In this document: piece after piece, positions 6,380-9,300 of the stretch
Layout of the letters: each line of letters starts with the position of its first letter
Numbering within the stretch: the stretch's first letter is position 1
Assembly: GCA_002269645.1 (NCBI GenBank)
Contig: NIVC01000624.1
Span: 1 to 64,000, forward strand
Source of the DNA: Macrostomum lignano
Taxonomy: Eukaryota
Reading direction: 5' to 3'
Length of the DNA: 64,000 nt
Made by a program: the position numbers and the translations under genes
Notes under the pieces: generated by a model
Database searches by the model: none
What the model was told of the DNA's origin: nothing
The model's input: the letters and a program-made list of their open reading frames with translations, nothing else

Positions 6380-9300
6380 ATGGACCTAGATGCAGAATCA
6401 GGGAGCATTAGCTCGGCCAGCGATTCGTACCAGAATGCGATATCTGATGACAATGGGATTTCTGGTTTGTTGCTCGTATAAATTCTATTTTTAAGTCTAC
6501 TGTTTGCATGATGGAGCATTAGCAAAATAATTTTTGAATCCCCTTTGCTTATCTCATTTTATAGATGTCGATAGCATCCTGAAGTCAATCCTTCCTCCGG
6601 AACTACTAAAAAAGAATGAAAAATCAAAATCAGCCAGCAAAGGCGCCAGTTCTAGTAAGAAAGATTATGAAGTGTCCCTGAGCAGCCTGGGCAGCGACTT
6701 CAACACTGCTAAATTCAAGTCTAGCCATAGCGGCAGCAAAAAGAAGAAATCTCCAAATGCTAGTCCTAACGATCTGGCTAAAGATGGCAGCGGTTCTCCA
6801 CCAGCAAGCGACCGTCGGAACGCCAAGGCTAAGCATAGCAGCAGGTCGAGAAAAGATTCCAACGATAGTCTCGACGCTATCATGGCCGGTCTAAGTAAAC
6901 AGATGGACGAGCTGCCACACCAGAGCGATCGTCGGAGCGCTAAAGTCGGGAAAACATCGAAGTCGTCTAACAGCAGAGGTAGGAAATCAGAGGACAACGG
7001 ACTTGACAATGCAATGGCCGGTCTGACGGAAGATGGCAACGCTTCAGCACTGAGCAGCGATCGTCGGAGCACCAAAGCTACCGGATCGTCCAAACCAACA
7101 AGCAAGAGGTCCAGGAAGGATTCCGACAATAGTCTTGACGCTATCATGACCGGTCTGGATAAGGATGCTAGTGAGCTGGCTCAGCAGAGCGATCGTCGGA
7201 GCACCAAAGCTGCTAAATCGTCCAAATCAACAAGCAAGAGGTCCAGGAAGGATTCCGACAATAGTCTTGACGCTATCATGGCCGGTCTGGATAAGGATGC
7301 TAGTGAGCTGGCTCAGCAGAGCGATCGTCGGAGCACCAAAGCTGCTAAATCATCCAAATCAACAAGCAAGAGGTCGAGGAAGGATTCCGAAAATAGTATT
7401 GACGCTATCATGGCCGGTCTAAACAAGGATGATAGCGAGCTGCCTCACCAGGGTGATCGTCGGAGCACCAATGCCGGGCGAACGTTTAACAGCAAAGGAA
7501 GGAAAGGTCAGGATGATGAACTTAATGATGAAGTGGCAGATCTCTTGAGGGATGGCAGTAGTGCTCAGCCAGTGAGCAGTGATCGCCGCAGCTCCAAGTC
7601 AACAAGCAAAAGGTCTAGGAAACATTCCAACGATAGTCTCGACGCTATCATGGCCGGCCTGAGCGACGATAGCGGTGAAGTGCCGCCGCCTCTGGCCAGT
7701 GATCGTAGAAGCGCCAAAGCTGGCGGATCTTCAAATCCAACTGGCCGGGAATCGGTCAAGCAGTCGAAGGATGCGATGGAGCCACCCCAAGCCGTTGAGA
7801 AGGCCAAGCGGTCTCATAAACCGTCGCAACCGCACGTTCCACAGCAGAGTAACCAGGCGAGGGGTCAGTCAGAGCAGCTGCTGCTGCCGAACCGGGACTC
7901 AAACAGCGTCCACTCCGGCCGGCCTCATATGGCGGACACTCGCTCCTGCGCTTCGGTCCGCTTTGCGCCCGACACTAACCAGGGCGATAATGGCAGCAAT
8001 GACGATCGTGACTTCAGTCTGTCGCCACGGCCAGATTCTGCCGCGTTTGATCGGCCAGATCGAGCTCGAGGTTTTCAGCAGCAGCAGCAGCGGGACAGGC
8101 AGAGGCAGCAGCGACAGTCTCAGCCGCAGTCGATGCAGCAGTCGCAACATGGGCAACAAATGATGCTGCAACAGCAGCAGCAGGTGCCAGCCCAGTTTGC
8201 ATTCGAGGTGCCCAGCATGGATTCAGGGAGCTCTCAAAATACGTAAGTTATTTAATTCGAATGATCCGTACACCTATACTTTGATGGATGCCGGCAGCCC
8301 TCTGTCACACCATCAATAAGAATGTCGCACCATCAACCATAATATCACACAATCAACTAGAATGTCGCACAATCAACCATAATGTCACACAATCAACCAT
8401 AATGTCACACAATCAACCATAATATCACAAAATCAACCATAATGTCACACCATTAACTATAATGTCACACAATCAACCATAATATCACACAATCAACTAG
8501 AATGTCACACAATCGACCATAATATCACACAATCAACCATAATGTCACACCATCAACTATAATGTCACACAATCAACCATAATATCACACAATCAACCAT
8601 AATGTCACACCATCAACTATAATGTCACACAATCAACCATAATATCACACAATCAGCCATAATGTCACACAATCAACCATGTCACACAATCAACCATAAT
8701 ATCAGAGTCAACCATAATGTCACACCATCAACTATAATGTCACACAATCGACCATAATATCACACAATCAACCATAATGTCACACAATCAACCATAATAT
8801 CACACAATCAACCATAATGTCACATCATTAACTATAATGTCACACAATCAACCATAATATCACACAATCAACCATAATGTCACACCATCAACCATAATGT
8901 CACACCATCAACTATAATGTCACACAATCAACCATAATATCACACAATCAGCCATAATGTCACACAATCAACCATGTCACACAATCAACCATAATATCAG
9001 AGTCAACCATAATGTCACACCATCAACTATAACGTCACACAATCGACCATAATATCACACAATCAACCATAATATCTCACAATCAACTATAATGTCACAC
9101 AATCAACCATGTCACACAATCAACCATAATGTCACACCATTAACTATAATGTCACACAATCAACCATAATATCTCACAATCAACCATAATGTCACACCAT
9201 TAACTATAATGTCACACAATCAACCATAATATCTCACAATCAACTATAATGTCACACAATCAACCATGTCACACAATCAACCATAATATCACACAGTCAA

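Follow-up and report, generated by a model that had tools for sequence, protein, structure and literature searches.

A SYCP1 orthologue in Macrostomum lignano and its candidate N-terminal tail of tandem repeats

Gene structure at the locus and identity of the core

The window analyzed here is a stretch of 64,000 nucleotides (nt) from the flatworm Macrostomum lignano (contig NIVC01000624.1 of assembly GCA_002269645.1, positions 1 to 64,000), the plus strand of which carries an orthologue of the synaptonemal complex transverse-filament protein SYCP1 and, just upstream of it, a large exon encoding tandem repeats that probably belongs to the same gene. The gene model was built by hand and comprises 16 exons, all separated by GT-AG introns, located at 6380-6464, 6565-8242, 9783-9873, 9967-10032, 10312-10453, 10541-10669, 10825-10898, 10984-11092, 11182-11461, 11538-11605, 11855-12054, 13893-13996, 14166-14303, 14922-15330, 15486-15911, and 16931-17041. 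Together they form one open reading frame (ORF) of 4110 nt encoding 1369 amino acids (aa), with 588 aa contributed by exons 1 and 2 (hereafter the tail) and 781 aa by the remaining exons (the core). As read from this model, the protein would consist of a disordered N-terminal tail, a long central coiled coil, and a basic C-terminal tail of the DNA-binding type, with KRRK among its basic stretches.

Exon 1 (6380-6464, 85 nt) starts at the ATG at 6380, about 30 nt downstream of TATAAATA at 6343-6350. It holds 28 codons plus 1 nt and ends in phase 1 at the donor G|GTTTGT (6465), which splits an Asp codon (G|AT). It is the sole ATG-containing exon able to start the frame of exon 2, in which no start codon occurs until residue 135 of the model. 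Exon 2 (6565-8242; tail residues 29-588) lies within a stretch of frame 2 that is free of stop codons across 6531-8243 (571 codons in the ORF scan). An earlier reading of the letters alone, here called the sequence-only reading, had placed a single exon of about 1.7 kb at this position, and its coordinates proved exact. The exon is open over its 1678 nt and bounded by splice sites, i.e., the acceptor TTATAG|AT, the AG of which ends at 6564, and the donor AC|GTAAGT, the GTAAGT of which starts at 8243. A putative intron 2 (8243-9782, GTAAGT ... CACATGCAG) separates it from exon 3 (9783-9873), where an ATG at 9784 stands 1 nt past the acceptor and where the equivalent of the human SYCP1 alphaN-tip (residues 101-111) is encoded. 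Exons 4 to 16 (9967-17041) continue the SYCP1 orthologue with a coiled coil of about 600 aa and a basic, Ser/Thr-Pro-rich C-terminal tail that ends at the stop codon at 17039-17041.

The core has no match to the Pfam family SCP-1 (PF05483), even at E <= 1 in hmmscan, which is a point against reading this gene as SYCP1. The same scan returned only weak generic coiled-coil families over residues 244-538, and phmmer against the Protein Data Bank returned no SYCP1 chain. BLASTP against human SYCP1 gave E values of 0.04 (human residues 101-206) and 0.38 (full length), both alignments being collinear, and hhalign against a profile of 16 vertebrate SYCP1 sequences gave a probability of 46% with an E value of 2e-4 (0.15 for the N-terminal piece alone). 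The best local matches to the human protein were collinear too, their positions differing by a constant value of about 100 residues, and included HHLCVSLKD aligned with RHLCNLLKE. SYCP1 was absent from the supplement listings of M. lignano germline transcriptome papers.

The SYCP1 identity proposed for this gene by the sequence-only reading was borne out by conserved intron positions and not by these searches. Introns were mapped exactly in the SYCP1 loci of Seriola, paddlefish, quail, and frog. After the IQELQ|F intron, the vertebrate coding exons measure 68, 74, 59, 70, 74, 109, 95, 185, 68, 62, 105, and 104 nt. After the intron between Lys52 and Arg53 of the core, the M. lignano exons measure 142 (68 + 74), 129 (59 + 70), 74, 109, 280 (95 + 185), 68, 200 (62 + 105 + 33), and 104 nt, the 104-nt exon 12 matching after an insertion of 11 codons. 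Nine intron positions with their phases (M. lignano introns 4 to 12) are common to the SYCP1 genes of all four vertebrates, and six of the matches are nucleotide-exact, with zero indels over 802 nt. Since chance cannot explain such a coincidence, the downstream gene at 9783-17041 is a true SYCP1 orthologue by gene structure, and this evidence is stronger than that of any sequence search.

In the ungapped alignment anchored on these introns, the identity to human SYCP1 is 13.9% and the BLOSUM62 sum is 64, compared to -133 +/- 44 for circular shifts, none of which (0/266) reached 64. This register places Met1 of the core at human residue 101, with which the alphaN-tip begins, and Leu9 at human L109, mutation of which abolishes synapsis in mice (PMC10588951). 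It also pairs AKL with SKL and again HHLCVSLKD with RHLCNLLKE, so that HLCxxLK is kept; human V105 is replaced by His and is not conserved.

Compared to vertebrate SYCP1 (structures of the human alphaN-end: 6F62 and 6F5X), the M. lignano gene thus shares, besides the nine intron positions and phases, a coiled-coil length that is identical over the first 267 residues past the anchor, the essential leucine of the alphaN-tip along with HLCxxLK, and the basic Ser/Thr-Pro-rich C-terminal tail. It differs in being only about 14% identical, which explains the missing Pfam and phmmer matches to SYCP1. It also contains one additional phase-0 intron, behind Lys30 of the core (9874-9966), in a region that corresponds to a single 165-nt exon in Seriola and frog, and in quail once a mis-modelled donor is corrected, and it lacks three vertebrate introns (within exons 5, 6, and 9). 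Over 9783-13996, conservation between flatworm and vertebrates is much stronger in coiled-coil length and exon structure than in sequence. Among synaptonemal complex proteins, whose sequences drift past recognition while their architecture is kept, conserved intron positions can demonstrate SYCP1 orthology even when identity is only about 14% and profile searches give no match.

The junction between tail and core

Splice signals, reading frame, and gene-structure homology favor a junction of 8242 to 9783 and, with it, a single gene with a long tail, possibly expressed beside a short isoform; we assign this reading a probability of roughly 0.6 to 0.7. Exons 1 and 2 would accordingly be (at about 0.6) the 5′ coding exons of the SYCP1 orthologue, giving a transverse-filament protein of 1369 aa with an N-terminal tail of 588 aa. 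At the junction, a perfect GTAAGT forms the donor, the acceptor displays a pyrimidine tract followed by CAG, and the phases are compatible. Intron 2 holds a 20-bp minisatellite (TGTCACACAATCAACCATAA, 73 copies, 8303-9741), and the non-repeat remainder of about 97 nt is typical of introns in the same gene. Three undisputed introns of the gene carry arrays as well, i.e., 440 copies of TCTA (12084-13853), 12 copies of a 33-bp unit (14384-14793), and 44 copies of a 22-bp unit (15954-16914), and the four intron arrays make up most of the intron length of the SYCP1 gene.

In vertebrate SYCP1, coding exons always lie 5′ of the core exon, and the intron before the latter falls 8 nt from the position of the M. 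lignano 9782 acceptor. Known SYCP1 proteins had been described as having about 100 residues ahead of the first conserved motif, and the vertebrates examined here agree, with 64 residues before the conserved core in Seriola, 72 in frog, 81 in quail, and 100 in human; the M. lignano model has 588. SYCP1 exon 2 of Seriola and quail measures 85 nt, with 28 codons and a phase-1 end in an Asp codon, as does M. lignano exon 1, and that of frog (58 nt) is 9 codons shorter with the same Asp split. A hydrophobic-Leu-Pro triplet occupies residues 9 to 11 after the split Asp in M. lignano, human (NFLPV), and turtle (NFLPG), a weak similarity. By our rough estimate, which is not a computed statistic, the exon 1 match favors homology about ten-fold. 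M. lignano exon 1 and the start of exon 2 are therefore probably the structural equivalents of ancestral SYCP1 exons 2 and 3, and because of this match the extra 500 aa or so would be an expansion inside the ancestral tail. The sequence-only reading, which had described an N-terminal extension added in front of SYCP1, probably needs amending on this point, as the expansion seems to lie inside the exon 3 equivalent.

An unstructured N-terminal tail encoded by exons 5′ of the core, one of them with 28 codons and a split Asp codon at its end, would then be a further likeness to vertebrate SYCP1. Unlike the vertebrate proteins, however, the M. lignano tail lacks the exon 1 motif FKLFVPPR...QVSAVKPQ, and no such motif was found upstream of M. 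lignano exon 1. We also considered the end of exon 2 as a counterpart of the vertebrate SYCP1 N-terminal motif (PFALFVPPRSSSSQ) and DRDFSLSP as a counterpart of DDFEFPF. Both were rejected: hidden Markov models (HMMs) of the vertebrate tails placed no domain on the real tail and gave shuffled sequences up to 9 bits, and the two look-alikes stand in the wrong order.

Several observations weigh against a continuous gene. Exact protein and ORF look-ups with the fused protein, its N part, its C part, and the ORF returned no match. The first full codon after the 9782 acceptor is an ATG and coincides with the conserved alphaN-tip start, which would be the look of a first coding exon. Reading through the donor gives ACG TAA, i.e., a stop codon at 8244-8246. 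The G+C content at third codon positions (GC3) is 0.56 in exon 2 versus 0.57 to 0.78 in most downstream exons, and the correlation of relative synonymous codon usage is only 0.48. Intron 2 is not strictly the vertebrate intron, because the two lie 8 nt apart and differ in phase (2 versus 0). The 85-nt length of exon 1 is counted from its ATG and not from an acceptor, so that part of the match may be coincidence, and the vertebrate-tail HMMs detected no sequence similarity between the tail and vertebrate SYCP1 tails. Moreover, 30 to 39% (38.8%) of M. lignano genes are trans-spliced to a spliced leader (SL), and repeat-adjusted operon spacers in this species peak at about 100 bp (PMC5730564, PMC8629364), a mode equal to the non-repeat length of intron 2 (about 97 nt).

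Much of this is what two separate genes would leave. Exons 1 and 2 would then encode a lineage-specific, disordered nuclear protein of 588 aa ending in ...SSQNT at the stop codon at 8244-8246, and SYCP1 would start at the ATG at 9784, with the SL trans-spliced onto the 9782 acceptor; the pair might form an operon of two genes, with a spacer enlarged by the minisatellite. The ATG 1 nt past the acceptor, at the very Met with which the conserved core starts, fits this arrangement, as do the TAA directly after the donor G and a spacer that measures about 97 nt once the array is subtracted. So do the enrichment of trans-splicing among conserved genes (PMC8629364, PMC5730564), the presence of one giant exon 2 with lower GC3 next to 14 small exons in the SYCP1 core, and the orphan sequence of the tail. 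Like the SL trans-spliced operons of M. lignano (PMC8629364, PMC5730564), the locus has two coding units on the same strand, a spacer of about 100 nt once repeats are subtracted, and an ATG directly past the acceptor, the context of which (TGCAG, ATG at +2, about 97 nt of non-repeat spacer) is compatible with SL trans-splicing. It differs from them in having, at the end of the upstream unit, a perfect cis donor whose frame agrees with that of the downstream unit, and in that the first exon of the upstream unit mirrors an SYCP1 exon.

With two genes, a stop codon inside a perfect GTAAGT and a compatible frame would both have to arise by chance, for which we roughly estimate a joint probability of 0.2 to 1.5%, and exon 1 would share its codon number, phase, and split Asp with SYCP1 exon 2. 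When an acceptor is preceded by a cis donor, that donor is expected to prevail over the SL (Conrad et al. 1993, as related in PMC8629364), and if a single pre-mRNA spans both parts, the fusion is therefore favored. In addition, the terminal ATG of the SL would fall 4 nt upstream of the ATG at 9784, out of frame. No SL RNA gene was found within the 64-kb window. The absence of AATAAA and ATTAAA from 8200-9800 speaks only weakly against two genes and is in itself uninformative, because no such signal follows the true SYCP1 stop codon either. Altogether, we consider two genes unlikely, yet the strongest of the alternatives. If they were real, the upstream gene would encode an orphan repeat protein that, being co-transcribed with SYCP1, would be a candidate for a meiotic factor specific to this lineage.

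Somewhat less probable again is the coexistence of both forms, with a long isoform cis-spliced from exon 2 and a short isoform from Met 9784, which an internal promoter or trans-splicing would provide. In that case SYCP1 would bear the tail only optionally, perhaps depending on sex or stage. Such a pair of isoforms accounts for all of the signals, that is, the functional donor and frame as well as the ATG at the acceptor and alphaN-tip start, but trans-splicing in the presence of an upstream cis donor is expected to be a minor outcome (PMC8629364).

The repeats of exon 2

Exon 2 opens with a Ser/Lys-rich leader (6565-6806) that contains an LD-like helix, VDSILKSI (6567-6590), followed by ILPPE. 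Seven tandem repeat units of 39 to 44 aa come next (6807-7697), then a partial eighth unit and a non-repetitive stretch rich in Pro, Ser, and Asp (7698-8075), and finally a Gln-rich stretch with two runs of five Q (8076-8183). The basic/Ser-rich region and the polyQ noted previously are thus both present, and the count of seven repeats holds for complete units, with a partial eighth to be added and with lengths that vary instead of being uniformly 44 aa. Tandem Repeats Finder detected a 132-bp period at 7056-7471 (3.2 copies, 93% matches). At the protein level, complete units start at nt 6807, 6924, 7056, 7188, 7320, 7452, and 7578, and the partial unit starts at 7698.

The LD-like cores of the seven units start at nt 6870, 7002, 7134, 7266, 7398, 7521 (degenerate), and 7638. 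A core of the SLDAIMAGL type had been ascribed to every repeat; [L/I]DxxMxGL is found in six of the seven, three of which (units 1, 4, and 7) have that core in its exact form, whereas the core of unit 6 is degenerate (LNDEVADL). Each core is flanked by SDRRS and SKRSRKDS, in agreement with the RRS/KRS kinase-type sites reported around the cores. The basic half of each unit has 6 to 9 Lys/Arg versus 1 Asp/Glu, and the acidic half, which bears the helix, has 5 to 7 Asp/Glu versus 0 to 1 Lys/Arg; each repeat unit is a block polyampholyte. AlphaFold2, run on the single sequence and therefore weak evidence, predicts the tail to be mostly disordered (pLDDT, its per-residue confidence score, below 50 for 403 of 559 residues), with helices (pLDDT up to about 80) on VDSILKSI and on the cores of units 1, 3, 4, 5, 6, and 7, and none in unit 2. 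The Ser just before five of the core helices fits the pattern [D/E/N]-x-S-hydrophobic, the consensus of Polo-like kinases, and matches of the basophilic-kinase type comprise five copies of RKDS or RKHS and five of RRST or RRSS. The hydrophobic spacing of the core, judged by eye, does not fit the usual classes of CRM1 export signals, and this candidate was set aside.

The resemblance to paxillin-type LD motifs pointed out by the sequence-only reading is real as a pattern. The repeat core (L-D-x-I-M-x-G-L) matches LDXLLXXL and is identical at 7 of 10 residues to the core of paxillin LD4, LDELMASLSD (peptide: PMC7703752). The bare pattern finds more than 6000 human sequences, mostly false positives (PMC7703752), and we take the likeness as resemblance, not membership. 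Like the repeat cores, paxillin LD motifs are short amphipathic helices in disorder, present in several copies per protein, with an acidic +1 residue and adjacent serines, and the M. lignano cores are close to LD4 (LDELMASL). They are also close to paxillin LD5, LDSMLGSL. They differ in their setting, which would be nuclear and meiotic and not a focal adhesion, and in being near-identical tandem repeats, each with a basic patch. It is quite improbable that the cores are true LD motifs docking an LD-binding domain (a FAT-like four-helix bundle, a parvin CH domain, a GIT PBD, or similar). Their fit to the pattern and to LD4, their acidic flanks, and their prediction as short helices in disorder are what such motifs would show, but any amphipathic helix with i, i+3, i+4, i+7 spacing fits as well, most matches to the pattern alone are false, and the known LD partners work in cell adhesion and not in the nucleus.

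Between units, the proportion of synonymous differences (pS) is 0.4 to 0.78 and that of nonsynonymous differences (pN) is 0.16 to 0.52, with pN/pS of 0.27 to 0.75 for all pairs except the near-identical units 3 and 4, which indicates that the amino acid sequence of the repeats is under constraint. The array is old, with purifying selection on the protein, and is not a recent neutral minisatellite. An exhaustive phmmer search with the tail against 1.84 billion representative proteins gave a single match, P0002 (UniParc UPI0007A2DEED), which is taken to be another M. lignano ab initio model and contains a second M. lignano copy of exon 2, 98% identical over 470 aa with the frame kept. This search thus detected no homologue of the tail outside M. 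lignano among those proteins, and no other transverse-filament protein is known to have a tail of about 590 aa that is composed of tandem modules. That exon 2 is a chance or decaying untranslated ORF, such as a minisatellite expanded in an intron or 5′ leader, would suit its low-complexity repetitive sequence and a genome rich in tandem arrays but is very improbable in view of its 571 open codons at 54% GC, a pN/pS below 1 between diverged units whose synonymous sites are near saturation, an intact frame in the second copy (98% identity), and good flanking splice sites with matching phases.

Public protein models of this gene are faulty. P0002 joins a THAP9-like transposase, exon 2, an odd linker, and the core, and it ends in the middle of SYCP1. 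We discounted its exon 2-to-core join as evidence for the junction, since it is an ab initio model that engulfs a transposase and its 32-aa linker is absent from the window. P0001 (UniRef A0A1I8FC96, M. lignano) has exon-derived stretches identical to the window exons; it is mis-merged, beginning inside SYCP1 exon 10 and continuing into the downstream gene at about 18900-22700. P0001 was the only match in a word-index homology search with the core, and the same search with the tail gave none, in each case among the 8000 word-sharing candidates scored. With human SYCP1 as the query, it gave vertebrate matches only and no invertebrate SYCP1. A Pfam match of the tail to Cep57_MT_bd (25.7 bits versus a cutoff of 31.3, summed over three repeat copies) was rejected as repeat inflation.

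A possible role at the synaptonemal complex midline and other features of the window

The midline of the synaptonemal complex is where SYCP1 N termini come together in head-to-head fashion, and what the tail would do there, i.e., its localization, binding, and regulation, is inferred. If exons 1 and 2 are indeed part of SYCP1, the ancestral exon skeleton would have been kept, with a 28-codon exon ending in a phase-1 split Asp codon, and the exon 3 equivalent would have grown by tandem duplication of a 44-aa module along with low-complexity growth. From each head-to-head tetramer, four long disordered tails would reach into the central region, each with seven block-polyampholyte modules in which a basic patch precedes an acidic patch with a short amphipathic LD-like helix. 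Through their charges and their helices, the modules could engage one another or central-element proteins in numerous weak contacts, which may thicken or stabilize the central element, and phosphorylation of the serines beside the helices (Polo-like and basophilic RKDS-type consensus) might tune these contacts.

A stronger proposal, which we regard as improbable, is that the tail is a built-in scaffold of the central element, in which the 28 modules per tetramer would drive a phospho-switchable condensation of the midline. The equally improbable corollary is that such a tail would partly replace the separate central-element proteins of other animals. The SYP proteins of Caenorhabditis elegans are multivalent disordered components of liquid-crystal-like synaptonemal complexes, for which the proposed glue is weak, multivalent, phospho-regulated contacts in the central region, and the contacts proposed here would be similar. 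Unlike them, the M. lignano module would sit in the transverse-filament protein itself, as tandem repeats.

If the junction is true, the transverse-filament tail would be about six times its usual length, with tandem interaction modules placed where the two halves of the complex meet, and it would constitute a natural experiment on the share of central-region assembly that is due to multivalent weak contacts. M. lignano offers transgenesis, RNA interference, and transparent gonads, which make the idea directly testable.

Elsewhere in the window, ORFs on the plus strand at 1-1400 include a stretch resembling a CCHC zinc knuckle (CFRCLGHGHTGMNCRRGRKC), pointing to a retrotransposon gag fragment; two of these ORFs were scanned with Pfam and had no significant match, and scans of neighboring raw ORFs gave no usable match. 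Numerous other long micro- and minisatellite arrays lie at 19178-21573, 27300-27990, 31500-33000, 41500-41900, 48600-49200, and 59100-61000. Some of these arrays are open in all three frames and therefore produce long spurious ORFs in mechanical ORF lists.

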